From Thalia democratica (lineage: Eukaryota), in assembly GCA_965202585.1 (NCBI GenBank), contig OZ241826.1:105090001-105154000 (forward strand): DNA of 64,000 nt, in the 5' to 3' direction. The notes beneath the pieces were generated by a model that saw only the letters and a program-made list of their open reading frames with translations, was not told the origin of the DNA and made no database searches. Each line of letters begins with the position of its first letter. Positions within the stretch are counted from its first letter, which is position 1. The translations under genes and the position numbers were made by a program. Positions 1 through 47,600 of this stretch are shown piece after piece.

Positions 1-1981
1 AAAAATAATTTAAAAAATGTCTTTCAAATCATATTTGTAATGAACAGGTCATTTGGCAACAATAAGCTCAGAAATAAGTTGAGCAGATCTTTTTAAACAA
101 ACATCCTAAAACGCTCGTTTTGCAAAAGTTGCTTACAAGCAAGAACTGCATCAAAATTTTTACTTGATGGTCGGATCTTGACCGCAGTTTGCCAATTTCA
201 AGTTAAAGGTATCAAATATATCACATCTGTTTAACTCCTACATTTACTAAGTGAAACATTCGATAAAGTTATATTAGTAAGTATTGAATTTTCATGTTTA
301 TATAAGTTGCATTTTCAAGAGTCTAGTGACTTCACGATTTCAAAATTCGCACAATTTTTATTTGGAAATTGTACAAATTTTTAATCATAAAAAAGTTTTG
401 TTATTACAATTTCCCATTCATTCAGTGGATTGATTTTAAAGCTACACTCAGGTAGCTAAATAATAAATTAATGAATGTTTAATCCACAGTAGGTCTACCG
501 CATTTGGTCGTCAAAGAGAGGAAGGAGTCTTTGTAAATAGTAGATTAAGAACTTTTAAAAAAATATAACTATACTTTTTTAATAACAATTACTTTGGTGC
601 ACTTAATTTTTATTTAAGAATCTAGTTGTAAATATTATGAGTGCTTTCGTGTTTTTAAAAATTATTTTGAAATTTTGCTACAACTTAGTGACGTCACGCG
701 TTGAAAAATTGCATAAAAATAATTTTGAAAATTAATTAAATATTTTCATCCTGCTATAATTTCTCTTTCTTCAGTCATCCTGTTTAAGGAATGGAATTTG
801 AAGCTACTTAATAGTAGCTATACTATAAACAGTTCGCCATTTAAACTGCGTTAGTGGTTTGAACGGTACTGCTCTGCATTTATTAGGAGAACAGATAATA
901 TTGAGCTTTTTAAAAACAAATATTTAATGCACATTAATTTTCAATATCTAGTTAGTGTTTTTTAAAAGAAGATTAGGGGTAGCACATTTAGTGTATTAGT
1001 TAAATACGATTTATGCAAATCTGACTCATCTATTTAAACTAATTATTTCAGCACTTACCTTCAGCACTACAGTGGTAAACTGCGTACCGTCAAGCAAAAA
1101 TGTCTTTGTACTTATTATGTTGAGAACTACTCGAGCAAATAATATCAAGATTTTTAAATTATACGATGATCTTTATTTAGTTTCAGTATCTAGTTGTACT
1201 TATCAAAAAGGAGTAACATTATGATTATTTTGAATTAACATGAGTAGTGCAGATCTGAGACCTCAAATTAGTTATTTAAGCTCTTTAATTTAAGTTCTTT
1301 AACTATCTTAACTCTACTTCTTCTTCTTTTTAATAACTCGAACTGTTTAGTTACTTTTATTTCAAACTCTGCTTTCTCAAACATATAGTGACGTAATGTA
1401 GTTTTAAATAGCAAAAATATGTTTTAAAGTTTGTATAAACACTAAAATAATCTGTCTCAATTATTACGAACACGATTAAAAATGGGTGTATATTTGAAGC
1501 CACGCCATGTGGCTAATACAATGTTATATTAATTTTTATTTTCAAAATTTTAAAAATTCACATGCTCATCATAAATTAAAAACAACATATTATTAATTAC
1601 TTCCCTTAGCTAAGGTTAAAAAAATAAATTTTATGATTACACCATTAGCCGCCAGTTTTCTTTGGCAAAAATTTCATATTACGAAGCTCTTCAAGTTAAA
1701 AGTTGTTTAGTTTAATGATCTCTATATTAAAATATTTTGATGATATTAATACAGTAAAAAATGTTTTTTATCCAATGCTCTATAACACTGTTAGGCAGCC
1801 TTTTACAGGGTTGCCAAAAAACTTGTAATCCTGAAAAAAACCAGGAATTTGAAAAAAAATTGAAAAAACCTTGATTTTGAACATAATTGTAATAAAGTAG
1901 TCATTTAGATAATAAAACGGTTTGCTTAGAATAAAGTTTTAAATGCATAAGAAATACTGGTTTTGCAGAAGTAGTTTCCAA

Positions 1982-2547
1982 TGTCCGTTTGCAGGGCCTG
2001 GCAGCCACAACGGAACAGATACTGCCTCTGAGTAACTTGAAATCATCTTAAAATACTGTTACTTACAATATTAGGCAATATTAGAATATCAAATATGCAT
2101 ATCAACATAGGGAATATAAATATATGGAATCAATAACAAATACTAATAATAATATGAACATTTAACAGGATCTAACAATTTTAAACAATTATATATAAAT
2201 ACAGATAACTTAAACTACCACTAATATACTAAATAAATCACTAGTATATTTTAAACAACTAATTTTTACTAATTTTTATTATTAAACAAATTAGAAATGT
2301 AAACTTCAATTAAAGATAATAAAGAGAGATAAACAGTATTTACAAGATAGCAGTTCTCTGAAGCCTTAACATATTACTTTCAATACATATAATGTCAACT
2401 CAAGCCCTATCATTCAAATCTGCCATATAAAAAAGTGTCTTCAAAAAAACAACAAAACTTATCCATTGTTACGTAATATCTTTTAATTTTAGCGTTCTTA
2501 GAAATAAATAACTTTTTTGTACTTTTTCGAATAAGCCTAACATTACA
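1982..2547 (-). repeat. 3' LTR of the element
   Basis: Matches 5725-6290 by eye except at 1990, 1993 and 1994. Confidence 0.93.
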
Positions 2548-2559
2548 CTATCTTTCCTT
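2548..2559 (-). promoter_or_regulatory. Polypurine tract (AAGGAAAGATAG)
   Basis: 11 of 12 bases are purines, directly before the 3' LTR on the minus strand. Confidence 0.75.
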
Positions 2560-4346
2560 AAAAGTCTATTTTAGAATTACTGCTAGGATTTTCTAAAACA
2601 TTTCAGGATCAACCAGAAGGTTTAAATTAATAAGAAAAAAAAAAAAAACTTTAAAATGTGTGTTAATCTGGTACACCTTTCAAAATTAAAAAAAAACTCT
2701 AAAGCAACATAAAATTTTGAACTCTCTATACAGCAAACACTTCAAACAAACAAAATCAAAATATGATCACTAGCACCAAAAAAAACAAAAAATATATATT
2801 TATACTAAAAAAAAAAGCATGAAGTGTGTTTAATCATTAAATTGCAAAAGTAAATAAAAAGGAATACATTGCTTTCAAGTACCAAAAATTGAAGTAAGAT
2901 TAAACTCTAAAAAAAAATGAAAGCATAAAAAATTATAATTTACATTTGAAACAAAAATTTTATAACAATTTTAATCCAACAACAAAAAATATGTGGTGCA
3001 GTCAATCAATTTAATTGCAAAGTAAACAAAAATAAATAGGAATACATTGCTGTTATGTACCTAAAAAATTGGAGTAAATTTTAACACTTATTTCAAAAAT
3101 AAAAACTTAAAATATAGAAAATTTGGTATGTTAAATGCAATTAAACAACTAAACTATAATAAAAGATAGTTTCAAGATAATCTTTATTAACACTAAAATC
3201 TCTATTGAAACAGTGAATTTGAATTTAAAACTAAAAAAATATTACTTTACACAAAAATATTAATGAATTGTTATTTACCAATTTTATGTTTCAAAATTTT
3301 AAAGTAACATGTTAGGTGTAAACTCAAAATAAAGAAATTAAAGCATAAAAATTCAGTTTTATACATTTTAATAAAAAAAATAAAATAATTTCAGCAAAAA
3401 AAAAAATAGTAATATCTTTAATTTACAGTGTTAAACTTACAAAATGTCACCAAATCCTTCAGCCAATCAGGATTTCCCAAACGCCATTTCACTGACTCTC
3501 CTCCTCAGATCAGTAACTCGCTGCTGGCTCCAACATTGTTGCTCCTCCACAGGCCATCTCCACGGTCTTAGCCTGATTGTCTCCGGCTGTGCTGATAGTT
3601 TGGAATATTGGACTGCTGCCATCGTTTTGCAGTGGACTGCTTCCTGACAGTTGATGAAATGTGACTGCCACCGTCATCTTGCAGTGGCTATTTGTGACAA
3701 CATGCTGCTCCCTCCTACTGTTGAACTCTTAATGAAATGCAACTGCTACTGTTATTTTTCAGTGGCTGTCAGTGACAACTTTCAACCAGTTGAAGAACTG
3801 CTATTGATAAAACTGTTTAAAAAGAAAACAAAAACAGAAAAAACAAACCCATTGAATCAAAAAACCACAAAAAAGTATATATATACCAGCAGGCCAAAGC
3901 CTACTGCAGAAAAATTGAGAAAAAAAAAAAAAAAAAAAATTCCACCAAAGAATATCTATTCATCTAATTCAGACAACACTCTGAAGAAAATAGGGACTTC
4001 AACAAACTACTATTTACCAACAAAAATACCAAGTGTCTTTTTATGCATTTTATTTTAAATTTATTATCTATTTATTAATCCTTTTTATTTATTAAAATTG
4101 TAGGAAAATGAATGAACTAAAAAAAAAAACACAATAAAACAAGAAACCCCATAGTTAACATAGAAAAATTACTAGTTATTAGAACTATTATATATAACAA
4201 TATAATAATTATTTTTAGTTTGCTAGCAATGTAATATAATACTATTACTGTACTTTAATTTTAGTTAATAATAATAAGAATTAAATAAAGAAGTTACTAG
4301 TTACAATAATTAATGTGCGATCTTCCTAATATTTAATCAGTGTAGA

Positions 4347-5789
4347 TTATTTGTGCCGCCATTTGTGAAAAATGGAGAATGAAGCTTTATTTACATCAGA
4401 TACATCTTTAATTATGTATGGCCATATGTGAAAGGTAAACCAACTTAAATACTTTCTCAGATTTTGCTTTTCAACCATAATTTCAAGATCAGGCTTACTA
4501 ATAACTTTTGCTATAGGTGAAAACTCCTTATCCACCACTTTACTGCATTTTTTTTTTGTGCACGACGCTGAAGTCTCTTTTCTTGGTGAAATTTTTGCCC
4601 TTTGGATGTCACTGTGGTTCCTCTTTGTAGAAATCTTGGACACTGTTTCCTTTCGCAGCTCCTTTGCAATAACAATGTCATTTTCCTTAATTGAACTTCC
4701 AGGTTTAACATTCCTTGGCAAGACCTTTGCCCTCTGGATGTCACTGTGATTCCTCTTTGTAAAACTATTGGACACCGTTTCCTTTGGCAGCTCCTCTGCC
4801 CTAAAAATGTCATTTTCCTTAATTGAACTTCCAGGTTTAACATTCCTTGGCAAGACCTTTGCCCTCTGGATGTCACTGTGATTCCTCTTTGTACAACTAT
4901 TGGACACCGTTTTCTTTGGCAGCTCCTCTGCCCTAAAAATTTCATTTTCCTTAATTGAACTTCTAAGTTTAACATTCCTTGGCAAGACCTTTGCCCTTTG
5001 GATGTCACTGTGGTTCCTCTTTGTACAAATCTTGGACACCGTTTCCTTTGGCAGCTCCTCTGCCCTAAAAATTCCATTTTCCTTAATTGAACTTCCGGGT
5101 TTAACTGATTTCTCATCTGGTACATTGGAAAAATCTAATCTTTTAACTGGCAATAATATTTCTGATATGATTGTTTGGGTAGGTAGGGTTGGTTTTTTGA
5201 TGTGGCAACTGGCGTTTGGGTTTAGCTGTCTGGGGGTGGTCTTAATTATTGAGTAAACAGCTTTAGTGTGAGATGGGTAACCCCCAATCACTCTCCCTCT
5301 CACTGCTGGGAGTGTAGCTTTCAGTCTGTTAACCCTGTTCTTCACCTCCTGAAGCTCCTGATCCAATCTAGCAAGTCGTAGTTGAGATTCAAGTGCCTCT
5401 GCCTCTCGCCTTGCTTTCATGAGCTCACGCATCAACTCAACTTCTTGGTTTTGACGTTCAAACCGTTCCTGCTCACGCCTTGTCTCCTCTCTTTCTAAGA
5501 TAAGTTTTTCTAGTTGCTTCTGCTCCTGCTTTGCCATCTTGATCTCAAATGCCTTCTCATTTACTAATCTTTCAAACTGTTTGCTCCTCTGTTTTGTTCT
5601 CTCAAGATCCCATCCCTGCTCTATTGCTAAAGAAGTGTCTCTTGTAGCTATTTCGTGGTCAGTTGCTAATGGGTTGTCGTGTTCCACAATGACATTGTTG
5701 CCAAGTGTTTGGTACGGGTCACCATGTCCGTTCGCGAGGCCTGGCAGCCACAACGGAACAGATACTGCCTCTGAGTAACTTGAAATCAT
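4347..5789 (-). CDS. LTR-element ORF, 480 aa: coiled-coil N-terminus (possibly gag-derived) plus four 44-aa K-rich repeats
   Basis: Uninterrupted ORF in the element's sense orientation; E/R/Q/L heptad-like stretch at ~aa 60-160. No CCHC knuckle, protease, RT or integrase motif recognised. Confidence 0.7.
   Translation of the reverse strand: MISSYSEAVSVPLWLPGLANGHGDPYQTLGNNVIVEHDNPLATDHEIATRDTSLAIEQGWDLERTKQRSKQFERLVNEKAFEIKMAKQEQKQLEKLILEREETRREQERFERQNQEVELMRELMKARREAEALESQLRLARLDQELQEVKNRVNRLKATLPAVRGRVIGGYPSHTKAVYSIIKTTPRQLNPNASCHIKKPTLPTQTIISEILLPVKRLDFSNVPDEKSVKPGSSIKENGIFRAEELPKETVSKICTKRNHSDIQRAKVLPRNVKLRSSIKENEIFRAEELPKKTVSNSCTKRNHSDIQRAKVLPRNVKPGSSIKENDIFRAEELPKETVSNSFTKRNHSDIQRAKVLPRNVKPGSSIKENDIVIAKELRKETVSKISTKRNHSDIQRAKISPRKETSASCTKKKCSKVVDKEFSPIAKVISKPDLEIMVEKQNLRKYLSWFTFHIWPYIIKDVSDVNKASFSIFHKWRHK
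4590..5105 (-). repeat. 132-bp coding tandem repeat, ~4 copies
   Basis: GGATGTCACTGTG recurs at 4604, 4736, 4868 and 5000. Confidence 0.95.
5711..5724 (-). promoter_or_regulatory. Primer-binding site (TGGTGACCCGTACC), possibly tRNA-Trp
   Basis: Abuts the 5' LTR. The first 9 nt are complementary to the ...GGGUCACCA 3' end of metazoan tRNA-Trp; the match is only 9 nt. Confidence 0.7.
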
Positions 5790-6290
5790 CTTAAAATACT
5801 GTTACTTACAATATTAGGCAATATTAGAATATCAAATATGCATATCAACATAGGGAATATAAATATATGGAATCAATAACAAATACTAATAATAATATGA
5901 ACATTTAACAGGATCTAACAATTTTAAACAATTATATATAAATACAGATAACTTAAACTACCACTAATATACTAAATAAATCACTAGTATATTTTAAACA
6001 ACTAATTTTTACTAATTTTTATTATTAAACAAATTAGAAATGTAAACTTCAATTAAAGATAATAAAGAGAGATAAACAGTATTTACAAGATAGCAGTTCT
6101 CTGAAGCCTTAACATATTACTTTCAATACATATAATGTCAACTCAAGCCCTATCATTCAAATCTGCCATATAAAAAAGTGTCTTCAAAAAAACAACAAAA
6201 CTTATCCATTGTTACGTAATATCTTTTAATTTTAGCGTTCTTAGAAATAAATAACTTTTTTGTACTTTTTCGAATAAGCCTAACATTACA
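5725..6290 (-). repeat. 5' LTR of the element
   Basis: Direct repeat of 1982-2547, followed on the minus strand by a TGG-starting PBS. Confidence 0.93.
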
Positions 6291-9200
6291 CCAAGATAAA
6301 ATTGTATCGAAATTTTTGCTTGATTGAATCTTGATCGCAGTTTGCTGATTCTTAATTAACCGTTTAAAATATATCACATCTGTTGAACTGCTTAATACAA
6401 ACTTAATTAATTAAGTGAAAAGTTCGATATAATAGTTTATATTGAATTTTCGTATTTAATAAAAAGTTGAATTCTGAAGAGTCTAGTGACGTCACTTGTC
6501 AAAACTTGCATACTTTTTTTTTGGAAATTGTACAAATATTTTATCATGTTAAAAATTTGTATTTCACATCCACATCATTTAGTAAATTCAATTTTGTAGC
6601 TACTATTAGACAGCTAAGTCAAAAATTAATGAATGTTCAATCCACAGTAGGTCTAAGGCAAATGGCCCGCCAATAGAGGAGTCTTTGTTAATAGTAGATT
6701 GAGAACTTATAAATAAAATACAACTATACTTTTTATTACAAACAATCACTTAATTTTCATTTAAGAAGTTGTGAATATTATGAGTGTTTTCGTATTTATT
6801 TTAAAATTTTGCAACAGCTTGGTGACGTCACGCGTGGAAAAATTGCATAAAAATAATTTTTGAAAATTATTTAAATTTTTTCATCCTGCTTGAATTTCAT
6901 CTTCGTCAACCATCAGATGTTGAAAGAATGGATTTTGAAGCTATCAAGAGTAGCTATATTATAAACAGTTTGCCATCTAGACTGCGTTAGTATTAAGACG
7001 GAACTGCTCTGCGTTTATTAGGAGAACAGATAATATTGAGCTGTTAAAAACCAATACTTCATGCACATTAATTTTCAATATCTAGTTAGTGTTTTTTAAA
7101 AGAAGATTAGGGGTAGCACATTTAGTGTATTAGTTTAATATGACTTATGCAATTCTGACTCAACTATTTAAACTAATTATCTCAGCACTTACCTTCAGCA
7201 CTACAGTGGTAAACTGCGTACCGTCAAGCAAAAATGTCTCCGTACTTATTATGTTGAGAACTACTCGAGCAAATAATATCAAGATTTTTAAATTATACGA
7301 TGATCTTTGTTTAGTTTCAGTATCTAGTTGTACTTATCAAAAAGGAATAACATTATGATTATTTTGAATTAACATGAGTAGTGCAGATCTGAGACCTCAA
7401 ATTAGTTATTTAAGCTCTTTAATTTAAGTTCTTTAACTATTTTAACTCTACTTCTTCTTCTTTTTTATAACTCGAACTGTTTTAGTTACTTTTATTTTAA
7501 ACTCTGCTTTCTCAAACATATAGTGACGTAATGTAGTTTTTAAATAGCAAAAATATTTTTTAAAGTTTCTATAAACACTAAAATAATCCGTCTCAATTAT
7601 TACGAACACGAATAAAATTGGGAGTATATTTGAAGCCACGCCATGTGGCTAATACAATGTTATACTATTATTTATTTTCAAAGTTTAAAATTCATATGTA
7701 CATCATAAATTAAAAACAACATATTATTAATTACTTCCCTTAGCAAAGGTTAAAAAAATAAATTTCATGATTACACCATTAGCCGCCAGTTTTCTTTGGC
7801 AAAAATTTCCTATTACGAAGCTCTTCAAGTTAAAAGTTGTATAGTTTAATGATCTCTATATTAAAATATTTTGATGATATTAATACCGTAAAAAATGTTT
7901 TTTATCCAATGCTCTATAACACTGTTAGGCAGCCTTTTACAGGGTTGCCAAAAAACTTGTAATCCTGAAAAAACCAGGAATTTGAAAAAAATTGAAAAAA
8001 CCTTGATTTTGAACACAATTGTAATAAAGTAGTCATTTAGATAATAAAACGGTTTGCTTAGAATACAGTTTTAAATGCATAAGAAATACTGGTTTTGCAG
8101 AAGTAGTTTCCAAGATAAAATTGTATCGAAATTTTTGATTGATTGGATCTTGATCGCAGTTTGCTGATTCCTAATTAACCGTTTAAAATGCATCACATCT
8201 GTTGAACTCATGTATTTACTAAGTGAAAAATTCAATATAATAGTTTATATTGAATTTTCGTATTAAATAAAAAGTTGAATTCTGAAGAGTCTAGTGACGT
8301 CACTTGTCAAAACTTGCATAATTTTTTTTGGAAATTGTACAAATATTTTATTATGTTAAATATCTCATCCACATCCACATCATTTAGTAAATTCAATTTT
8401 GTACCTACTTTTAGACAGCTAAGTCAAAAATTAATGAATGCTCAATCCACAGTAGGTCTAAGGCAAATGGACCGCCAATACAGGAGTCTTTGGTAATAGT
8501 AGATTGAGAACTTATAAATAAAATACAACTATACTTTTTATTACAAACAATTGCTTAATTTTCATTTAAGAAGTTGTGAATATTATGAGTGTTTTCGTAT
8601 TTAGTTTAAGATTTTGAACAACTTGGTGACGTCACGAGTGGAAAAATTGCATGAAAATAATTTTGAAAATTAAATAAATATTTTCATCCTGCTAAAATTT
8701 CTCTTTAGTTAGTCATCCTGTTAAAAGAATGGAATCGAAGCTACTTAAGAGTAGCTATACTACTAACGGTTTACCATCTAAACTGCGTTAAATTTAAAAC
8801 GGTACTGCTCTGCATTTATTAGGAGAACAGATAATATTGAGCTTTTTAAAAACCAATACTTTATGCACATTTGTTTTCAATATCTAGTTGTGTTTATTAA
8901 AATAAGATATGGGTAGCACATTGAGTGTATTAGTTTAATATGATTTATGCAAGTCTGACTCAACTATTTAAACTAATTATCTCAGCACTTACCTTCAGCA
9001 ATATATAGTGGTAAACTGTTTATCATCAAGCAAAAATGTCTTTGTACTTATTATGTTGAGAACTACTCGAACAAATAATATCATGATTTTTAAATTATAC
9101 GATGATATTGATTTCACTCCAGTTCCTAGCTTATTAAAAATAATCACATTATGATCTTTTTTAATTGATAATGAGTAGTGCAGATCTGAGACCTAAAATT

Positions 9201-9701
9201 ATTATTTCAGCATTTATCAATAATTTACTAGCAAGCCAAGAGTTTTTTGTATAAATTTTTAAATAGCTGTGCTAATAATTAAAAAGTAACACATAGTTTA
9301 AAATCCAACTTGTATTATAAAGATTGTTTGTGGTCTGGAACAAATTTTTACAATGAAATTTTGTTAAAGTTAATATTTGTTTTATAACAACTTCATTGAT
9401 AAATTATATTATTAAAAACTTAATAAACTAGTTGTTTTAAAAGTCATATAACAAATATCTCTGTATATTGTGTAAAAGTATTAGTTAATAAAGTTAAAAA
9501 TCTCAATTTATAAGCAATTCAGCTAAGGATTCAAGTTTAAAAGATAGTTGCACCATAAGCTGTATTTTTAAACTGCTTTATTTGTATTTAATTCAGTTAT
9601 TTGAACGTAGTTAGTTACTAATTTACCGACAAATAAATTGTTTTAAAGACTTGACCGCCTACAAAAAATTAAGGTAATTATAAACTTATATAGAGTTAGA
9701 G

Positions 9702-10044
9702 CAGGGTTTCCCAAAGTGGGCCATGACAGATACTCAGGGAGCCACGAGCAGCAAAGGGGGAAGAGGGGGCCATGAGCAGTAAAGGAGCCACAGGGCGGCC
9801 ATAACTTGAAACTTACACTAGATATTCTTGAGTTGCAGATGAAGAGCAGAAAAAAAAGGTCTTATGTGTATTTTATGGTAGTTTAGAAACTTACACTAGA
9901 TATTCTTGAGTTGCAGACGAAGAGCAAAAAAAAAAAGTCTTTGGTGTTTTTTATCGTAGTTTATGAGTAATCTTGTTGAAGGGGGCCATTGCTTTTTCAG
10001 TTTCTTTTTAGGGGGCCATTTGCAAAAAAGTTTGGGATACCCTG
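9702..10044. mobile_element. hAT-type MITE
   Basis: TIRs CAGGGTTTCCCAAA / TTTGGGATACCCTG (13/14); 8-bp TSD AGTTAGAG / AGTTTGAG (7/8); homologous empty site at ~12730-12750; internal ~78-bp tandem duplication. Confidence 0.85.
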
Positions 10045-11488
10045 AGTTTGAGTAAGTAGTTTATATACTAACAAAAAAATCCATTTACAATACTTATCAA
10101 GTTATAAGTTGAAAATTAAAACATTGATTAGATAAGATAAATGTATAATAGTAGAGATAAATTTATAGTTTCAGTATAAGTCTATTAAAAGCATAAACAA
10201 ATTAATGTGCTTTTAATTGTGTCTTTGTGTATACTTAAGACAACATAATTACACTATCGTCTTTAACTATCTTAACTATACATCTTCTTTTTTTTCCAAC
10301 TCTTTGATTGTTTAATTTTTTCTGCATCTTTATTTTTTCTAACTCGCAACTGTTTTATTTTCTTTTTTTTCAAACTCTGCTTTCTCAAACATGTTGTGAC
10401 GTAGTGTAGTTTTTAAGCAGCAAAAATATTTTTAAAACTCTGTCTAAATACTCTAACATACACTGTTAAAAATTATCTTTGATGCGATTACGTTAAGGTT
10501 ATAATTAAAGCTGCTCAACGTGGCTAATACAATGTTTTATTATATTTATCTTTACAAATTTAAAAAGCTTATATGTACAAACCAAGCCTAAACCACAAAC
10601 AACATATTAATAATTATTCCACTGTAAGCTAAGGTTGAAATATAGTTTTATGATTACACTGTAAAACTTTTTTTTTGGAAAATTTCTTTATAACGTAGTG
10701 CTTCAAGTTAGAAGTTGTATAGTTTGATGATTTCTACATTAAAATATTTTGATAATCTTAATACAGTGTTTTTTTTTTTACAATGATGAACTATAATACT
10801 GTTATAGGCAGCCTTTTACAGCGTTGCCAAAAAGCCTGAAATACTGGAAAAACCTGGAATTTGAAAAAAAAACTGGAATTAAAACAAAAATCACAAAAAA
10901 CTTGGATTTTTAACATAGTTGTAATGGATTGGTTATTTAGTAACATAATTATTTGCTCATAATTAAGTTGTAAACGTATAAAAAATACTGCATTTTGCAG
11001 AATTATGTTGAACAAATGCAAAGAAATACTTGTTTTTAAAAAGTTGTTTTAAAGATAAAAGTGTCTCGAAATATTTGCTTGATTGGATCTTGATCGCAGT
11101 TCGCTGATTCCTAATTAACCGTTTAAAATACATCACATCTGTTGAACTCATGTATTTCCTAAGTAATACTGAACTAGTATAATTTCAAGAGTATACTAGT
11201 AAAAATTTAATGAATTTATACTAGTATAATTTGAATTTTCGTATTTAATAAAAAGTTGCATTCTGAAGAGTCTATTGACGTCACCATGTAAAAACTAGCA
11301 TAATTATTTTTTTGGAAATTGTACAATTTCTTAAACAACTAATTCGCTTTCCTTTCTTCGCTTCGTACAGTAGATTTATTTTGAAGTTGCATTTATGTAG
11401 CCAAGTATAAAATTATTAAAAGCATGACTACGGTATATGGCGCGCCATGAGAGGAGTCTTAGTAAATAGTAGATTGAGAACTTATTGA

Positions 11489-11805
11489 CAGGGTTGCTTA
11501 AAAACCTGGAATTTTAAACAACTTTTACATTTCTTACTACATTTACAAGAAGAAAAATTTCGGTTTGACACAAAAATATATTGTATTGATAACATTCTTT
11601 CGTCATCATCCATTTTTTTTATTAAAAAAGACACATTTAAAGAAGGTTTAACGTGTTTCTTTAATGTAGGTATACTATTTTACACAGTTTTTTGCCTTAA
11701 ATCTAATTTCAATCTAAAAATAGACCCTAAAACGTGTGATTTTAGAAACTTGGCGGAAATTTTAAAAACCTGGAGAAAATTTGCCGAAAATATTTGGCAA
11801 CCTTG
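11489..11805. mobile_element. MITE of a CAGGGTTGC(CA) TIR family, both ends present
   Basis: CAGGGTTGC...GCAACCTTG inverted ends; absent from the equivalent site in repeat copies 1-3; TSD unclear. Confidence 0.7.
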
Positions 11806-14184
11806 AATTGAAAGCATAAGTACACTTTTTAAATAACAATTACTTTGGTGCACTTAACTTTTGTTTTAGAACCTATTTTGCTTATAAATAATAAGGAATT
11901 TTCATATTTAGTTAAAAATTTTGGACTCTGAACAACTTAGTGACGTCACTTGTGGAACAATTGCATGAAAATATTTCAAAAAATTGTACAATTTTTTCAC
12001 CATACAGCAATTTATGTTCGTCTTCTATCATGTATCCGAAAAACAAATTGGAAGCTACCCAAGAGTAGCTATACAACATACATTTCACTATTTTTACTAA
12101 CGACCCTGCAAGCTTGATGCCATGCATTTATTAAGAGAGCAAATAATATTGAGCTCTTTTAATAACAAGTCTTTTATGTGCTTTAGTTTTCAGTATCTAG
12201 TTGTGCTTATCAAAAAGGAGTAACATTATGATTATTTTGAATTAATATCAATAGTGCAGATCTGTGACCTCAAATTAACTATTTTAGCACTAATCAGATC
12301 TATTACTAACAAGTCAAGAGTTTTTAATTCAGATTTTTTTGTACTAGTAATTCTATCAGAAACTTTATTATTGGTTTAGAGAAAATTTTAACAATGAAAA
12401 GTTTTTTGATTTAAAATGAAGTTTATCACAACTGCATGGATAAAATAAAATTTCAATGGCTAAATAAAGTAGTTTGTTTAAAAGTTATATATCATTTATC
12501 TGTTAGTTTTGTGTAAAAATGTTAATTAAGGAATCAATTTCATTCTTACAGGCACTTTTCTTAAATAAACTAAAAGCATAAATACACCATTAGCTGTATT
12601 GTCAAAATATCGACTGCTTAATGTGGTTATAATTTAAGTATTCTAACGCAGTTTATTACTAAAATACCAAAATATAAACGTTTCTAAAGACTTTAACCGC
12701 AAATTTTTTTTAAGGTGATCATAAACTTACTAAGAGCTAGATGAAGTAGTTTATATTTTACAAAAACGCCATTTATTTTCAAGCTTAAATGAAAAACGAA
12801 AACGTTAATCGTAAAGATAAGTAAATAATTACATTATAAATATTTTAAGAGCATAAGCAACTTAATGCGCTTTTAATTAAATTAAGGTATTTACCTTTGT
12901 GTACATTAATAACAACGTATATACTGCTTTTTAATTATCTTGACTCTACACATGCAATTTTTCCAACATGTTAAATTTTTTTTTTCAAACTGCAGTCTCA
13001 ACTGCAATGTAGTTTTTATGCAGCTAAAACATTTTTTTTTTAAATTGTTCTTTACACATACACGTTCGCTGTAATTAATATTTAATAACGGTTGGTATTT
13101 GAAGCTACTTAATAGGGCTTATACACATTTGAAATATGAATATGATTTATAAAAGTTTACTCTTAAAAATACTTTTAATAACTCTTACGGAAGCAAATAC
13201 GAGTATATTTAAAGCCTCTAATATTGTATTAAATATACTTTAAGTTTCAAGTTTTTTTACGATAATCTAATCTACAACATCAACGAAAAACAATGGATTG
13301 CAAACGTTTCGAAACTTCAAGTTTTAAAAAGACTGTGCTCACACATTCAAACTCTGCAGTCTCGCACGCGCAGTGACGCAACGTAGCTTTTGATTGAGAA
13401 AAGTATTATTTGAAGTTGTACTAAATTTTTATCCCAATAATGCCATTAACTATATATCTGAAGATTAAATTTGGGTTCAATTTAAAGTCACGGTATGTGG
13501 CTAATTTAGACAATAGAATAAGCGTAAATTTTACTTTTAAAAGTTTTATGAAGTAAACGAACTTGAATAATTGTTTTGTCTGTATTTAAAATTGGTAGTT
13601 TTACTATAAATTACAAAACGAAAGTTTTACTATAAATTACAAAACGAAATGAATTTGAAAGAATAAATTCATTATTTCTCCTCAAGTAGTTGAGATCTCT
13701 CTATTTGTTTTCTTAAAACCAAAACATATAATAAATTGGAAAACAGTTAAATTTTTTAAACATTTTAAACCTTTTTTTTTTTGTTTTACTGCGCACATGC
13801 ATTCAAAATCTGCAGTCTCGCACGAACAGTGACGTAATATAGCTTTTGATTGAGAAAAGTGTTATTTGAAGTTGTACGAAAATTTAAGCATGTGCGTACA
13901 GTTAACACAGGTTTTTTCCAAACAGGTTCAAATTTAAAGCCACGATATGTGGCTAGTATTAAATAATTATGTAAACATAAATATTACAAATAAAAAGTTT
14001 AATGAAGCTAACTAATTTAAATAGTTGTGTTCGTATTTAAAGTTGGTGTTTTATACCATAAATTACAGCACTGTTATTAAGTTGTGACATTTTAAAGCAT
14101 TTTTTAATATTATGTTACTTTCGTACCTTTTTCTAATATATTTCCGCAATATAATAAATTTAATTCTCGTTATATCATCTAGTA

Positions 14185-14580
14185 TTCTTCCACAGTTCGT
14201 ATTCGCCAAAACACACGAAGCTGCTTGCTTCAACTAACTTCAGTAAACATACATGAATAAAAATATAATTTAACTAACTTAATACTTTTACAGTATTATT
14301 TTCAGTTTGGACTAAAAACTTCTCGTTATAAACCAACTTATAATATTTATCTTATAACTTTATATTTATTTTACAGTCGGTTTCGCAAAATCACCAAAAA
14401 CTTCTTTTTTTATAATAATTTTTAATATTTTATAACTTTTTATTTTTTTTTAGTTCGGATTCGCGAAAACACCAGAAAGTTCTTGTTTTAAAATCACTTT
14501 GATATTTTGTAAATATTTTACAATTTATTTTATTATTATTTAATTTTCAGTTTGGATTCGCGAAAACACCAGAAACTTCG
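14185..14580 (+). repeat. Tandem copies of acceptor plus exon start (5 copies)
   Basis: Exon-start copies at 14196, 14306, 14377, 14454 and the functional 14551. Confidence 0.85.
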
Positions 14581-14624
14581 TGCTTGTGGGTCGAAGGAGA
14601 TGCCAGCGAAAGTTTTTTCAAAAA
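14551..14624 (+). CDS. SPEN: SPEN-like exon (RRM start, FGFAKTPETSCLWVEG)
   Basis: ttttcag acceptor, gtttgt donor, phase 0/2. Confidence 0.8.
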
Positions 14625-17600
14625 GTTTGTTTTTTTATTTTATTTTTGATAAATTTATGTTTAAAAACTTATTTATAATTATATGTTTCAATAAATTCAA
14701 TTTATGAGTTTTTAGATTGAAAATTATTTTTATGTATTCAAAAAAATTTTCATTCAACATTTTAATATATGCCAGTAAAAGTTTATCTAAAAGTTTGTTT
14801 TTGTTTATTTTCAAATCCCTTTTTTAGTAAATATACTGTTTAAATTAAGAAGTTTCAAAAATTTTTTTTAAATTCAAATAATATTAAGCGCTTTTTTTAG
14901 GTAAGTGAAATTAAAAAAATTAAATATTAATATTTTTCAAAATTGGAGTTCGAAAAGTTAATGTGGTTGATAATTTTTTTGGTGTTTAAATTATTTACTT
15001 TTAATCAATTAAACTCAGAGCTATTTTGTTAACTCTTGCTGAAAGCAAATAAAATCCACTTAATTATTATAGTAATTAAATTTGCATTAGTAAAACAAAA
15101 ATAACTTTTTACAACTGTTTAAGCTACTTCATTCAACATATGGTATAATTTATTTAAAAAAAAATAGTTTAAAATTTGTCATTATTTTCAATTGAATTAA
15201 GGCATCGAACTCATTTACTAAATTTGAGGCTAAAATTTGCAAACAAAAAATAATGGTTCTGCTGTAAGTAATAATAACTGTCTGTAATAATAACTGTGAA
15301 TTAATCATTCTGACTTAAGTTAAAGATATTTAGAAAAATAAGATTAAAATTTTAGTTTTTTTAGTAGTTAAATGATATACTGAAAAGAAAACTTTGTTAA
15401 AAAAGAAATTTTAAAACTAGTACCCGTATTTTCACTCCCCTAGTATAGATAAAATATAATTGGCAAGACAGGTAAGTTAATCAAATATTATATGATATAT
15501 TTAAATAATCTTTTTCACTCAGATTCAGAAAAAATAAGCACAGAAACCTTTTGTTAAAAAATGAATGAATTAAAAAAACATATTATTCACATATTTGGCA
15601 TAATAGGCCCGTTAACTCGCAATGAGAAATTGCGTAAATCATTATTTTATAAATTTGCTGTAAACTACCACTAAATCCATTTTTTTAAAATCAATAAATA
15701 AATGACTTTTAATTGAATTTAAACAAACTTATTCTATTCTATTTCTGATTTTTTTAATTATTGTATTATTTATTGTTTTATATATTATATATTTTACATT
15801 TATTATATTGTATATTTATTAACTCGTTAAATATTAGCCGTTTAACTCGCAATGAGAAGTCGCAATGAGAAGTCGCATAAATCATTAAAATTTAATAATA
15901 TAAATCTGCTGTAAACTATTACTAAATCCATTAATTTTTTTTAAACTCAATAAATAAATTTTTAATTTACCTAAATTTAAACAAACTTGTTAACAGATTC
16001 GGCAAGGTGGGCCCACTGACGCGCAACCAGAAGCTCCACCAATCGCTGGTGTTCTACGACAAATGCGAGCACGCCATTGGCGCGTACAGATCCATCCGGA
16101 ATTCCCCGCACACGAAACTGAAAGTTGACTACGCGGACAGATTTCTGATAAAATATTTCGTTCAGATCATGAAGAGATCCGGTTTGTTATTCGTGTATTA
16201 AATTCTAAATGTAGTTTAATCGTGTTGATTAATATTAAATACTAAGCTGAGTCTAGTGCATATAAGTCTCACAATAAAAAAAAAATCAATCAACATTTTC
16301 ATACTAACCACTAAATAGGTCTGATAAAATAACAACAGAAAGCAGGGTTGCCAAAATATCTGGAATTCTGAAAAAGTCTGTAAAAACCTAAAATTTGAAA
16401 ACTTAAGCAAAAAAAAAAAATAAAAATCTGACATTTAAGCATTAAAAAAAACTATGATAAAACCTGGATTTTTAAACCATTTTCACATGTAAAGTAACAA
16501 AGTTTCGAATAAATACGAAAAATCTATAATATATAAAAGTATAATATAGTATAATTTTATCTCTTAACTAAAAAAGACTATGTTTTAAGTACCTTTACAG
16601 TATTTTTCCAATGTAATTATATTGACAGTTTTTAACCTTAAGTTTTGTTGTATACTAAAAATGGACCAAAAAACTTATTTATTAAAAACCTGAAAGAAGT
16701 TCAGGAACACTAGAAGAAATTTACTAATAAAACTTTGAAGGATAACACATATAAAAAAATCTTTTTATATTATGAATAATACTAAATATGATATTATAAA
16801 CTATTATATTAACCAAATGTTTTTATTTTACTCACCAAATAGATTCAGTAAAATCTTCACTCAAAGGTCTTCTGTCGTACGATGCCGCCAGACTCATGAA
16901 ACTTCTCAATTACCCTAGCAACGAAACCTACTCCCTGGTAACCGAGATCACGCTGGAACCGCCTCCCGTTGCTAAGGAGAAGAAGGAAAAGAGTAAGAAG
17001 GATGAGAAGAAGCGGGAGGGCAGGAAGGAAAAGAAAGATAAAAAAGTATGAGTTTAAATTCGTTTAATATGTTCTTTAATAGCTATAGTACAGAGGAATA
17101 AAATATCTAAAAAGAATAATATAAGGTATAGGAATTATATATATAATAAAAATATAAAGGCATTTAAATATTGACATTATTAATTAAATTACAGTTGATG
17201 TATTAATGTATTAAGTGTTAAACTACTTTTTAAGTTGAACAAATCTCAGAAAATTTTCCACCATGTTTTGAACGTTTTATTAAACCTCAATGTTAAAAGA
17301 AGATTTGATAAAAAAAAAATTGAAGTAATTTGCAATTTTGTAAATCAAGTATTTAACATTAATTTTACAATAAAATTAACAAGTTTGTTAATCATTAACA
17401 ACTTTAATTCTTAATAAAAAAAACAAAATCAACTTTCCACAACTAAGTTACTATCGCATTAAAACATAGTATTTTCAGGATAAACCCAAACGTCTAGTCT
17501 AATTATTAACTTAACATAAAAATATATTAATATATAAAATATATTTAAAAAAATATTGAAATAACTTTATAATTTTCAGGATAAAACCAAACGTCTAGTC

Positions 17601-20600
17601 TAATTATTAACTTAACATAAAAGTATATTAATATATAAAATATATTTAAAAAAATATTAAAATAACTTTATAATTTTCAGGATAAAACCAAACGTCTAGT
17701 CTTATTATTAACTTAACATAAAGATATATTTATATAAAATATTTTTAAAAAAATATTGAAATAACTTTATAATTTTCAGGATAAAACCAAACGTCTAGTC
17801 TAATTATTAACTTAACATAAAAATATATTAATATATAAAATATATTTAAAAAAATATTGAAATAACTTTATAATTTTCAGGATAAAACCAAACGTCTAGT
17901 CTAATTATTAACTTAACATAAAAATATATTAATATATAAAATATATTTAAAAAAATATTGAAATAACTTTATAATTTTCAGGATAAAACCAAACGTCCAC
18001 GCAGCGGCAGCAGAGAGTCGAAATCTGAAAAATCTTCACGGAGACACCAGAGAGAAATTGCACGGTTCGTTCTAGTTAATATTCGTCTTTTTTTTTACAT
18101 AAAAGTTTAAGTGTAAACCACATAAAACAACACTTTTGTCTTAATTTTTGCATAATTTCTATCTGAACCTTAATTAATGTACTTTTATGTTCATTTCATG
18201 CCTTAGTAGTTTTAACCTTCAAACATCCCATAGAATGTAATTTTTGCATCCTAGTTCTAAAACATCGTAAAATTTGTTTCCTCTCCCCCTTATCAATTTA
18301 CTCTTTGATCCATAACCAGTCTTTAGAAAAAGTTATAATGTTTCTTTGTTTCCTCAAAACAATCAGAATATTCTCGCAGGTCGGTAACTCCACCGGGGGG
18401 CGTCTACTTGGAAACGCCGCAGCTCGACGACCCGGTTCCCGTGGAAACCACCGAGGTCACGGATGACGTAATAATGGGAGACGAGACGCCCACTAGGGAC
18501 GAAACTTCCGACCACATAATCAGTGAGTACGTGCCGAGGGGAAGTCAGCAGAAACCGAGGAAGAGTTCACAACATGTTAGTTTGATGATTATTTATATTT
18601 GTTATATTTTAAATAATTAAACTATATTGATAATATTAAATAAATACCTAGAAATTTTTACATAGAAAAGGCATATTAGTGGTTGGCTTTGAATAAATTT
18701 AGATTCCGAAGAAATGAGTTTTTTTATGTTTAAATAAAACTAATGGTAAAATTGTATAAAAGTTTTACGTATATTCTATTTTATAAACAAGTTTATGTTG
18801 AAACATTTAGTATTTAATTCTTTTCAGTCAGTTTTACAAATTCTTTATAAATTTATATAATCTTGTAATCAAAATTCTTCCAGCAGTACGAGGTACCGTT
18901 GTCAAGGAGCCCACTTTTAAGCGACGGTGAGGTCATAGAAGAAGTCGTTACGTCACAGTCGGGCAAGGAGAAAAAGAGCAAGAAGCGCAGGAACAAGGAT
19001 GACGTCATCAGTGACGACAGGAAGAAGCTGAAGCTTGATGACGTCACAACGGTCGATGGCAGGGGAGAAAAGGTTCATCAGTCGGGCGGTAAGAAGAAGA
19101 GAAAGTTCAAGCTGCCTGAGAGTGAAAAGAAGAAAGTTGTTGAAGGTTTATATAACTTTATTTTATTTATTATATTTGAATATATTTAGACTGATGGTTT
19201 GCACAGGGTTGCCAAAAAACTGCAATCCTGGAAAAAACCTGTAATTTTACAATTTAGGCTAGAAAATCCTGGTAAAACCTGAAGTTTAAGAAGTTTCGAA
19301 AAAAACCTTGAATTTTGAACGAAAATCAGTAAAATATTAGATATTATATTTGAACATATTTAGGCTGATGGTTTGTATAAATGTTTGTATTTGATAAACT
19401 GATGTTATATCATAAGTAAATTTTTACCACCAAGCTGTTTTTCATTAATCAAATTTTTCTATTCTTAAGTTTTTTTTATATATTCAAAATAATTAACACT
19501 TTCAAGTGAACTTGGAAATTTTGCATTATTAATTGATAAGTGATCCAAAGTTCACTTGGCTTTGTTGGTATTGCTTGAAAGTTAAGTTGTTAATTTGAGT
19601 TATAAAAACCGTGTCCGCTTAAATTTTTATTTATTGCTCTCAGCAAAGGTACATTTTGTTATTAATTCAAGGCCTGTAAATGATCAAACTTACAGTTGAT
19701 AAATTTCATGAATATTAACACAATTAATGTAAAGCTTTCGAAGCCATTTAGTTTAAGCCAATCAAGTATAACAAAGAAAAACTTTATCTTTGAGTCTTAT
19801 TCAAAAAAAAAAAAACTAAAAAAAATGGACAAACAGTTTTAGCAAACAAAAAAGTGCTTAAAATACTTTAGGTATTTGCCTAGGAAATAACTTATTACCT
19901 TTGCACATTTATTGTAACTGTAAAAACTTAAGTTTTCAAGAAACTCACTGTAGTAGCTTGTTAAAATTGTTTGCTGTTTATAAATATACTAAAGATAAAA
20001 ACTGGAATTATCAGAACTTTTACTGTGTGTTTTATGATTAAATGTTTGTAATGTTTGTTTTACGATTAGATTTATTGTTTGTTTGTTTAACGTGTTTACT
20101 ACTGGTAATATATCACTTTGGTTTCCAGGAATTGTCTCATAAATTTTCATAAAACCAGTCATATATCTGAAAATTAATCGAAGTTTTCAAATTTATTAAA
20201 GTATCTTACAGACTTAAATAAGGGTTGATATTTGTCGTTCTACAGTTTAAACAAATATTAAATATCACTTAAAAAAATTGTAAAGGAAGTACTGATACAC
20301 AGTTATAAGTATTTACAAATACAGTTATAAAAATATAATTATTAGTTTGTTTAAAATTGAAAAGTAACTAAACCATAAAAGTTAAGATACTAGATTGCTC
20401 AATTATCTTATTCAGTACACTCAAATCAAAAACTTAAACATACAAACTTATAAAAGACTTAAAAAACGCTATAAAGCAAAATTTACGTTACTTAAATACT
20501 AGAAAAACAACTATGATTTTGAAATTTACTTTTAATGTATGTAATGTAAAATTGCTGTTTATTTACTAACTAACACTTAACTAAGTTAGTTAATTAAATA

Positions 20601-44600: not shown

Positions 44601-47600
44601 CGATCTTTTAACGTAGACACACTGGATAATTTTAACATCATTTTCTCCTGTTCAGAGATACCAGCGGCTTCATCCATTACGTCTTCATCCAACAAAAATC
44701 AAGAGCATTCAAAAAACTTTTCAACAACCAATGAGCATTCAAAAAACTTTTCAACAACAAATGAGCATTCAAAAAACTTTTCAACAACCAATGAGCATTC
44801 AAAAAACTTTTCAACAACCAATGAGCATTCAAAAAACTTTTCAACAACCAATGAGCATTCAAAAAACTTGCACCCTCTCAGTGATCAGCCGGCTTGCGCT
44901 GGGAGCGGAACTGTCAACGCCGGCAACGCGACTACTGTGACGTCACAACCGGACGTCGCGTCGCACAAGGACGATGCGTCACAACACGAACGCGCGTCGT
45001 CCGATAATTTGGTGGAATCCGAATTTAAGGAGAAAATTGAAACGTTTCAGGATGTCGTTGTAAATGACGACGATTTTCCTGGCGACCAATTGGAAGACGA
45101 GATCGTCGTCATGGAAACTTTCGACGCGGAAGTAGTCGAGGAAACGGTGGTTTGCAACGATGACGTCATGAGTTCCGATTCGTATGACGATGACGTCAGA
45201 AACTTCGCGCGCGCCTTGCTCGAAGAGAGAAGTTCCGTTGACGAAACGGAAGTCGTCGCAAAGAAGAAGGTCTCCAAGGAAGAAGCTCCCAAGGTTGAGC
45301 CGAAGAAGGAAAAGTACAAAGTGGAAGCTCCTATTACTTCAAACTACAAACCCAGCAAGCAGGCGCTGGTCAAAAAGAAGGAGAAAAGGTCTTTGGAGGA
45401 GAGGAAAGACAGAAAGATGATACCGAGCAAGAAGAATTCGAAACAAAAGGTGCAGAAGAGAAAGAAGAACTTTCTCGAATCAAGCTCTGAAAGCTCGAGT
45501 TCTCTGAGCGATTTTTCAGACGATGACGATATTATTATGAACAAGTTGGTACCCGAGAGAAAAATGTCACCTCAGAGGAAAATGTCACCCAAGAAAGCGA
45601 AGCACAAGGTTCATTCCAGGGACGAGAGGATAAAATCTCCTCCCGCTGAAAAGAAGAAGAAAAATAGGGAAGAATCTATGGAGATCTCTTCTCCCAAACA
45701 CCACAAGAAAGTCAAGCACAACAGGGACAGCCCCAAAAACAAACCGGTCAAAAGCAAGCACGAGAAAGCGAAGAGTAAACACTCGAGCGAAAAATCCGAC
45801 AAGCCCAAGTCGTTGAAGCCGCACAAGCAAAAGAGCGTTCAATCGACTCCTACGCCTAAAAAGGAGCAGCCTAAAATTTTGAAGAAGAAAAAGAAGTCGC
45901 CTCTCAAGCGTCAGGAGAAAGTGCCTCTTTATAGCACTTCCAGCAGCTCGGAGAGCGACGGGTTCAATTTCGACGACGAAGTTCCGAAATGCGCACCTTC
46001 TAAACTCGACCCGAAGATTTTGGATTCTGAAGAAAGCGACGCGTCAAAAAGGCGCGAAAAATCAAAACTTCCCGATCTTTCAAACTTCTCGTCAACTTCG
46101 TCTTCCTCCAGCAGCGACGACTCGTACATGGAGGGATACATCAAAGAGATGATATCGAGACCGCAGGAGGAAGTCGAGAAAGTGAAGAGCAGGAAGCAGG
46201 GACAGAGCTCGTTTGAAAAACCCAAGAAAGACCCGAAACACGAGGACCAGCAGTCGAAGCAGAAAAATCTTAATAAATCTCAATCCTACAACGTGTGCTT
46301 GTCTTCAGACTCTAGCCTTGATGTCGACGCCAAGCTGCCCCAATCCGCTCCTCCCTACCAACACAGACCCCACGACAAGCAGTTGCCTGGCAACAAGAAG
46401 TCGTCGTTCGCGTCGCCATGCAGGAGTAAAGATCAACCCAAGTTCTCCAGCAAAGTGAACAAGAACAAGAAAAAGTTTTCGTCGCCACCAAGCACCAACT
46501 CTCCTTTCAGGTAAACAATAAATTAAGTATATCATTTAGTTTCACTTTTCTAAATATTTTTTTTATGAACAGAACACACATATATTTCACAAGTACTTTC
46601 GTTAATTTTTATAAATAATAATTTTAACTGTAAAACATGTGTAACTAATATTTTTAAAAATGTTCAGGTACAATAAAAACAAGGGTAGTATAAGAAAAAC
46701 ATTTATTAACAACTCTGTTTTTTTTTTGATAAATATTTTATAGTAATAAATACATATAGATCTTGCTTCAACAAAGAGATGCGTAAACCTTCTTTCGAGT
46801 CTTTCAAACCGGTCAACTTCAAACCTTCGTCGCAAAGCTTCTCATCAACCGACTCAGATAACAGCGACGATTCAGATCAACCTACATTGAACCTGGGCAA
46901 GACGTTGTCAGAAGAGGAACAGAAAAAGTTCATGGGCAACAAAGTGTTTTCAAACGTGCACAATAAGAACAAGTTTGAGAGGAAGGTGTCGAAAGATCAC
47001 GGTGATAAGAGTAAGCAGTGGCTGCATAAGAACAAGAAGAAAAACAAGAAAAGTTCGCAGCAACCACAACAGGTATGAATTAGTTTTCATTGGCTTCGGA
47101 TTTTAAGATTTTAAAACAAAATATAGTGTTAATATATAATTTAATACTTATAGATGTATCATATATTTAAGCCATGTCAAAAAAGTTTTAATAGCTTACT
47201 CCCAGCATATTTACAACATTCTACTTGATAAGTACCACTATATAACAGTTGTTACTAGTCTTTAAATATACTCTTTTACTATACTATCAAACACAAAACT
47301 AAAATTCATACTACTTCCTTTAATAAACTGTCTTTTTTTTCAACATAGGTAAAACCCCCATCAAGCAACCAACACCGCAAGATATCATGGCAATCTAGCA
47401 ACAGTCCATCATACTCATCAAGTGATCACCACCCGAAAGTGTCGAAACTTATGAAGAAATCTTCAGGTTCACCTGCTGTGAACTACTTGAACAGCCCTTC
47501 CAGTGTGAAAGAGAAACTGAAGAACGAGTGGCTTGCATCCAGTGTTGATAAGGTTTGTAACTTAAATATGAAACAATAAAAAATTTGATACATGGTATGC

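Follow-up and report, generated by a model that had tools for sequence, protein, structure and literature searches.

The first 14 kb of a 64,000-nucleotide (nt) stretch of the Thalia democratica genome (GenBank assembly GCA_965202585.1, contig OZ241826.1, positions 105,090,001 to 105,154,000 of the forward strand; the whole stretch is hereafter called the window and is numbered from its first base) carry 14 small cassettes (315-14049), all on the + strand and of four types, a to d, each with a short hairpin. Ahead of the hairpin lies a segment whose sequence turns over while its length is kept. Two observations are new here: the segment changes faster even than spacer private to the units, and conservation returns in a second block, 72-111 nt past the first base of the hairpin. 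We read the region as the edge of a cluster of individually promoted mini-genes of small nuclear RNA (snRNA) type, in which the fast segment would be the 5′ arm of the RNA, an antisense recognition segment whose diversification is favoured. In our judgement, this reading stands about evenly between right and wrong.

Fourteen cassettes and the turnover ahead of their hairpins

Positions within a cassette are counted from the first base of its hairpin (H), and the variable stretch, H-56 to H-11, is designated V. Rates are expressed as Fitch parsimony changes per ungapped column in alignments made within each type, and re-choosing the tree (best topology) gave the same values. V accumulated 0.69 changes per column, against 0.31-0.44 in the private spacer of the units (z +5.0), i.e., about twice the turnover of the neighbouring spacer, and the excess was present in each of the types a, b, c, and d. 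It peaked at H-48 to H-25 and also surpassed the rate of the stretch that follows the hairpin (z +2.35). Three parts were more conserved than spacer: the promoter zone (H-152 to H-57; 0.21 changes per column, z -4.3), the 3′ arm of the hairpin (H+12 to H+21; 0.15, z -2.4), and a downstream block (H+72 to H+111; 0.21, z -3.3). The Sm-like motif, 5′ hairpin arm, and loop (H-10 to H+11) changed at 0.45-0.54 per column (z about 0).

Pairwise alignments of the units, in which gaps were counted as mismatches, gave V as the more diverged part in 6/6 usable pairs (V versus spacer: 30% v 12%, p 4.5e-7; 24% v 14%; 34% v 25%; 54% v 31%; 54% v 32%; and 62% v 30%; Fisher p 0.049 to 4.5e-7). A share of the non-V 40-column windows (2-18%) diverge as much as V; the significant point is that the same position is affected in every type, not the level of divergence alone. 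The preliminary description of this DNA had placed the divergence just upstream of each hairpin. The concentration was confirmed in all four types, and V is clearly more diverged than the adjacent AT-rich spacer. The wording needs two amendments: the zone, though the same in every type, is separated from the hairpin by the Sm-like motif of about 10 nt, and V is the peak of divergence rather than its sole site. The cassette sequences quoted in that description were found where it had put them. The 14 cassettes are as follows (bp, base pairs).

Cassette a1, 315-551, + strand: TGACTTCA site at 327; V 384-429; Sm-like motif 430-439; hairpin 440-460 (6 bp, intact); conserved downstream block 512-551.
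Cassette b1, 677-913, + strand: TGACGTCA at 689; V 746-791; Sm-like motif 792-801; hairpin 802-822 (7 bp); downstream block 874-913.
Cassette c1, 1377-1609, + strand: TGACGTAA at 1389; TATAAA-type box at site+45; V 1442-1487; Sm-like motif 1488-1497; hairpin 1498-1518; downstream block 1570-1609.
Cassette a2, 6475-6709, + strand: TGACGTCA at 6487; V 6542-6587; hairpin 6598-6618, weakened by two A-C mismatches; downstream block 6670-6709.
Cassette b2, 6811-7050, + strand: TGACGTCA at 6823; V 6883-6928, the most diverged among b1-b3; hairpin 6939-6959 (6 bp, one G-U); downstream block 7011-7050.
Cassette c2, 7512-7745, + strand: TGACGTAA at 7524; V 7578-7623; hairpin 7634-7654.
Cassette a3, 8283-8514, + strand: TGACGTCA at 8295; V 8347-8392; hairpin 8403-8423, broken (C-C).
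Cassette b3, 8615-8850, + strand: TGACGTCA at 8627; V 8683-8728; Sm-like motif degraded to AATCGA; hairpin 8739-8759 (7 bp).
Cassette c3, 10385-10620, + strand: TGACGTAG at 10397; V 10453-10498; hairpin 10509-10529, two G-U pairs keeping the stem.
Cassette a4, 11264-11496, + strand: TGACGTCA at 11276; V 11329-11374; hairpin 11385-11405, two G-U pairs keeping the stem.
Cassette b4, 11929-12164, + strand: TGACGTCA at 11941; V 11997-12042; hairpin 12053-12073 (6 bp).
Cassette x1, 12978-13214, + strand: dead copy with the TGACG core deleted; hairpin 13103-13123, broken.
Cassette d1, 13362-13597, + strand: TGACGCAA at 13374; V 13430-13475; hairpin 13486-13506 (one G-U).
Cassette d2, 13818-14049, + strand: TGACGTAA at 13830; V 13882-13927; hairpin 13938-13958.

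In many pairs of paralogues the V segments are no more alike than shuffled sequences, although their flanks can still be aligned. This random level was reached by a1 and a4 against the other type a units, b4 against the other type b units, c3 against c1 and c2, and d1 against d2 (local similarity scores 10-19; shuffled 95th percentile 17). The last pair illustrates the profile, with 45% identity in V, 78% in the 50 nt upstream, and 81% in the Sm-like/hairpin part. At the other end of the range, V of c1 and c2 differs at 4/46 columns, and their 32-nt Sm-like/hairpin segment is identical; the 3′ half of V in a3 is that of a2, while its 5′ half is different and holds a short slipped repeat. Units b2 and b3 had been described as differing heavily here and little in the 50 nt upstream; the contrast exists but is mild (68% versus 78% identity). 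Altogether, the 14 units contain at least 9 distinct V sequences; V could not be aligned between types, and no V was found to be shared across types.

Insertions and deletions are as frequent in V as in the spacer but are short: V has 8 events that take up 20 columns, and the spacer has 27 that take up 193. The substitution spectrum of V has neither strand asymmetry nor an excess of transitions (transition/transversion ratio 1.24, against 0.98 in the spacer; small counts). In types a and b, C is enriched and G depleted on the + strand across the first two-thirds (5′) of V, at ~25% and ~8%, respectively, as judged by eye; the local level is ~14% for each.

Promoter, spacing, and the predicted RNA

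A TGACGTCA-type site is present in every cassette except x1 (near 13000-13125), and the 9-mer GTGACGTMA matches the window 66 times against 12 expected. Three elements follow the site: an octamer- or TATA-like A/T block 20-35 nt past it, a TTGTAYAAAT-type box 40-44 nt past it (TATAAA in type c), and a T-rich run with an ATC or TCA end at 56-61 nt. The conserved promoter extends over ~95 nt in each unit, and its conservation stops precisely at the ATC/TCA motif, near H-55. From the TGACGTCA-type site to the hairpin the distance is 108-116 nt (mean 111.2, standard deviation 2.3), and it stays within 8 nt even between types with unrelated V; the length of this stretch is therefore constrained, in agreement with the earlier remark that length is kept while sequence turns over. 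Part of this constraint is expected from any promoter-to-start spacing.

Two models of the RNA start fit this geometry. If the ATC/TCA motif is the start, the TGACGTCA site would be centred ~55 nt upstream of it in the manner of a proximal element, the whole of V would be 5′ arm, and the RNA would measure ~75 nt. If the TTGTAYAAAT box is a TATA box, the start would fall near H-40, the RNA would measure ~60 nt, and V would be divided between TATA-to-start spacer (~15 nt) and 5′ arm (~28 nt). The window holds no bona fide snRNA gene with which to compare the promoter. Termination by RNA polymerase III at a T-run was rejected: runs of four T lie inside the predicted RNA in 5/13 units (by eye), and so the model misfits type a. 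A metagenome scan for the promoter geometry returned 30 chance matches in unrelated, GC-richer contigs, none of them with the tail.

The hairpin has a stem of 6-7 bp, and the 14 stems total 73 Watson-Crick, 14 G-U, and 4 A-C pairs. A double change from T-A to C-G separates the stems of types a and b from those of types c and d, and G-U pairs maintain the stem in a4, b2, c3, and d1, where they would be A-C mismatches if read on the - strand; for these four units, folding the + strand gives a much more stable structure than folding the - strand. Pairing has thus survived by way of G-U intermediates and a single double change, evidence in favour of an RNA of the + strand, and by the pattern of its base changes the hairpin is a selected RNA structure of that strand. 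It is intact in 11/14 units. In minimum-energy folds, most units form the terminal hairpin, and V adopts no structure consistently; nor did V give a consistent fold with the fast post-hairpin stretch, as one long hairpin precursor would.

A U-rich, Sm-like motif of ~10 nt (e.g., AAUUUGA or AUUUUGA) abuts the hairpin in all units. The conserved block at H+72 to H+111 (50-90 nt past the hairpin) is a candidate 3′-end signal; the four types share no motif within it. In type b there is also a possible second hairpin ~25-45 nt past the first (825-870, 6962-7005, and 8762-8805), with the stem CAGUUUG/UAGACUG in b2 and pair-preserving changes in b3; b4 does not have it.

From this anatomy we infer that each mini-gene would be read from the + strand by its own promoter, made up of the TGACGTCA-type site, the A/T block, and the TTGTAYAAAT-type box, put at 42-52 nt past the site in this reading. 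The predicted RNA of ~55-75 nt would consist of a free 5′ arm, the U-rich Sm-like motif, and the terminal hairpin of 6-7 bp, which is the layout of U7 or of a minimal spliced leader (SL) RNA. V would correspond to the 5′ arm and may also take in the final bases of spacer between TATA and start. A protein ring, presumably of Sm type, would assemble on the tail, which would stabilise the RNA. Selection would keep the promoter, the spacing, and the tail and leave the sequence of the arm free; diversification of the arm between paralogues would be favoured, each duplicate gaining a new specificity.

Proposed selection on the arm and the competing explanations

The preliminary description had suggested that the variable segment is a diversifying guide or spacer. 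The excess of changes in V over both the spacer and the post-hairpin stretch, the kept length, the predicted lack of structure in V, and a spectrum with neither strand asymmetry nor transition excess (in small counts) all count for selection on the arm; x1, the sole copy without the TGACG core, is also one with a broken hairpin. The cassette bodies are low-copy in the genome's own reads (summed word depth ~70-130), while depth is 3-7 times greater in those 200-nt bins that contain the b and c promoters, which is consistent with shared promoters and unique arms; as contigs were aligned at 85% likeness, so that paralogues of the window mix (b1 letters on b3 and b2), depth is a hint of copy number only.

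Several results weigh against a guide. The reverse complements of the 14 V segments, compared with both strands of the rest of the window, matched no better than dinucleotide shuffles (summed P 0.25 for the longest exact match and 0.93 for the best G-U-tolerant 18-nt pairing), in a low-power search whose space was genomic DNA, including a long terminal repeat (LTR) element and four very high-copy repeats, rather than a transcriptome. A search of public runs for the region returned no RNA run and only two matches, both of DNA type and from one sample, which are probably the source of the assembly. Rfam gave no match in the window at the gathering score, and for bases 1-15000 with E up to 10 it gave no U7, SL, or other family, only chance snoRNA (small nucleolar RNA) and sRNA (small RNA) matches. 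Within the cassettes, 3/14 hairpins are degraded (a2, a3, and x1), only about half of the units have a canonical Sm-like motif (A, 3-4 U, then G), and the motif, the 5′ hairpin arm, and the loop change no more slowly than spacer. Part of V may be untranscribed TATA-to-start spacer. Finally, the post-hairpin stretch H+22 to H+71 also changes faster than spacer (0.49 changes per column, z +2.2), and therefore some of the V excess may be mutational over a transcribed stretch. On balance, the guide reading is partly supported and plausible: the excess rate, the kept length, and the unstructured V agree with it, and the expected complementarity above shuffles did not appear in the 64 kb. Selection on a guide-like arm ranks first among the explanations, narrowly.

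The closest competitor takes the cassettes for the same genes and attributes their turnover to mutation: heavy transcription would raise the mutation rate over a short unit, the arm would be unconstrained, and its length would be kept by spacing needs. We regard this as a serious though minority possibility. It fits the raised rate past the hairpin and the spacer-like rate of the Sm-like motif and 5′ arm, as if a raised input were offset by selection there, and high mutation rates are on record for tRNA and snRNA genes (PMC6130373; bioRxiv 10.64898/2026.10.12.758683). However, V outpaces the post-hairpin stretch, and in type d that stretch is not raised at all (15/49, versus 26/44 in V). The spectrum of V lacks the strand asymmetry and the transition excess that could betray such a process, within its small counts, and the purpose of an RNA with a meaningless 45-nt head is left unexplained. 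A segment that outruns spacer at kept length is either a product of diversifying selection or a mark of intense transcription; if only mutation is at work, the cassettes would be a clean case of transcription-linked hypermutation in short non-coding genes outside vertebrates.

It is improbable that the flanks, not V, are the odd part, i.e., that gene conversion within the family keeps promoter and tail uniform, or that patches copied from distant members, with the conserved flanks serving as homology arms, replace V, so that V only seems fast. Exchange of this kind does suit the locus, whose segmental copies U1-U3, described below, are mosaics (U1-U2 ~97% alike in one part and ~80-85% in another, and U2 equally close to U1 and U3). 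The V of b2 differs in a burst from those of b1 and b3, and the promoter bins are several times deeper than the cassette bodies in the genome's own reads. Yet V is faster even than private spacer, which lies beyond the reach of conversion within the family. Base-by-base homology remains in V of a1/a2 and b1/b2, which points to point changes rather than swaps; different types have no V in common, and the genome's own reads hold no additional V copies at >=85% likeness.

Still less probable is decay: the cassettes would be non-functional remnants of a dispersed repeat, and the pattern would be an artefact of where sequences can and cannot be aligned. The three degraded hairpins, the several degraded Sm-like motifs, and the 2-18% of equally diverged windows outside V would be expected of such copies, and alignable spacer is a biased sample in which badly diverged sequence turns into gaps. 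Decay does not explain why three parts (promoter, 3′ arm, and downstream block) are significantly more conserved than spacer, why stem changes preserve pairing, or why the same position is hit in four independent types; the excess in V, moreover, survives the counting of gaps as mismatches and holds in close, unambiguously aligned pairs.

We give the least credence to SL-type RNA genes with polymorphic leaders, in which V would be the mini-exon, the GU 8-21 nt before the hairpin the splice donor, and the Sm-like motif plus hairpin the intron part: a GU does stand at a type-specific place before the Sm-like motif in every unit, and the piece from GU to hairpin end (31-42 nt) is close in length to its counterpart in the Ciona SL RNA, a 30-nt intron part (PMC7986045), but a GU within ~20 AT-rich positions is not rare, the donor context is poor beyond it, the Sm motif is unlike the Ciona AGCUUUGG, and almost every copy would have a leader of its own, although constancy is the norm for SL exons.

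Known small-RNA systems and the layout of the locus

Among known systems, U7 snRNA is short, its antisense 5′ arm is free, its Sm-type motif is U-rich and non-canonical (the cassettes' AAUUUG/AUUUUG start being of this kind), and it ends in a hairpin; its genes have an external snRNA-type promoter at a fixed distance. All of these have putative counterparts in the cassettes. The V of types a and b also holds CUCUUUC/CUUUCUU-type runs that recall the pyrimidine-rich antisense part of U7, a weak likeness among copies that share ancestry. In U7 there is almost no gap between the pyrimidine-rich part and the Sm motif, while type b has 20-30 nt between the two. The 5′ arms of the cassettes vary in almost every copy, whereas that of U7 is one conserved anti-histone sequence, and the window contains no histone gene. 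Membership in the U7 family was rejected, with no match to the U7 model and a 5′ arm that is not conserved, down to the random level; a U7-derived family is conceivable. Homology has not revealed U7 itself in tunicate genomes (PMC8704543), an absence on which the cassettes, if our reading of them is true, could bear.

The closest analogue in design is provided by the nematode type-I mini-genes for PIWI-interacting RNAs (piRNAs), or 21U-RNAs, which are likewise clustered, tiny, and individually promoted, and which combine an snRNA-promoter-derived upstream motif with a unique transcribed sequence valued for its diversity (PMC6436959, PMC6317315, PMC7917550). The nematode product is a Piwi-bound RNA of 21 nt with a 5′ U and no constant tail. 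The cassettes, too, are individually promoted units with a unique, presumably transcribed, sequence; the likeness is one of design, not of descent. They differ by their constant Sm-like/hairpin tail, their predicted length of 55-75 nt, and their chordate host, and the constant tail argues against membership among mini-genes of the nematode type.

SL RNA genes (the 46-nt SL RNA of Ciona, PMC7986045, and the polymorphic SLs of some nematodes) resemble the cassettes in size and in the order of parts, i.e., 5′ segment, GU, Sm-type site, and hairpin. The cassettes differ from them in having a weak donor, a different Sm motif, and no constant leader: V differs between copies, and the 16-nt Ciona-type tunicate leader is absent from the cassettes at <=3 mismatches, on which grounds assignment to this class was rejected. 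Variant families of spliceosomal snRNA genes, such as human variant U1 (vU1), have arisen by duplication and vary in sequence at the 5′ recognition end (PMC3561869). The cassettes share with them tandem or segmental duplication and variation at that end; vU1, however, retains a recognisable U1 body, while the cassettes have no known snRNA body and a 5′ end that varies without limit. A generic snRNA gene of the Sm class would have an external promoter with a proximal element at a fixed distance from the RNA start and a 3′ box a few bases past the mature 3′ end; the cassettes have a conserved zone at H-152 to H-57, a start-like ATC/TCA motif 56-61 nt past the TGACGTCA-type site, and a downstream block 50-90 nt past the hairpin. 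Provisionally, the cassettes are best filed as snRNA-type genes of a new variant design.

A wider proposal, which we think unlikely but worth stating, is that this planktonic tunicate has a large repertoire of Sm-tailed guide RNAs each from its own snRNA-type mini-gene, in which duplication is followed by diversifying selection that drives the arms apart; this would be the chordate equivalent of the 21U mini-genes, built on a U7-like scaffold and aimed at RNA processing (3′-end formation or splice-site choice) or at the surveillance of foreign or repeat sequences. If the arms are real guides, they would represent a new animal route to a diverse RNA-guided repertoire, in which a U7-like scaffold was multiplied and re-aimed.

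The window is AT-rich (28% G+C) and contains no N. Self-comparison of bases 1-15000 resolved four diverged copies of one segment, over which the cassettes are spread.

Segment copy U1: 114-1981.
Segment copy U2: 6292-8113.
Segment copy U3: 8110-9230 plus 10330-11030.
Segment copy U4: from 11029.

Types a, b, and c recur in each segmental copy, and the two type d units and the dead x1 lie at 13.0-14.0 kb. A pattern search found no further match to the cassette-type hairpin in the 64 kb outside the cluster, and the window therefore holds the right-hand edge of the cluster. U1 (114-1981) and U2 (6292-8113) are ~97% alike in the back half (900-1981) and ~80-85% alike over the front (114-900), and U2 is equidistant from U1 and U3. 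This mosaic likeness points to gene conversion or unequal exchange inside the array.

The junction of U1 and U2 is occupied by the LTR element (1981-6291), between the spacer of c1 and a2, whose 568-bp ends are 99.5% identical. Its open reading frame (ORF) of 480 amino acids (aa; 4347-5789, - strand) has no Pfam match and includes a 132-nt tandem repeat of 3.9 copies (4594-5105). Short inverted-end elements also lie within the cluster, at 9692-10091, 11492-11891, 10692-10891, and 7892-8091 (also ~1800-1890). Their summed depths in the genome's own contigs are ~600,000, ~90,000, ~28,000, and ~17,000, respectively, against ~100 for unique DNA, and they are very high-copy repeats resembling miniature inverted-repeat transposable elements; one such repeat adjoins the downstream block of a4.

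Immediately beyond the cluster, at 14150-14600, stand five diverged tandem copies with a period of ~78; the unit ends in a splice-acceptor-like TTTTACAG, after which comes a conserved TCGGATTCGC-type segment, and the final copy continues into a likely exon; the array could represent alternative first exons or trans-splice acceptors beside the cluster. Two young tandem arrays lie farther to the right. The first, at 17471-17997, has a 101-nt unit in 5.2 copies with 96% identity. The second, at 44703-44869, has a 30-nt unit in 5.6 copies with 98% identity and immediately precedes an ORF of 548 aa (44868-46514) that has no Pfam match; several TGACGTCA sites occur in this stretch.

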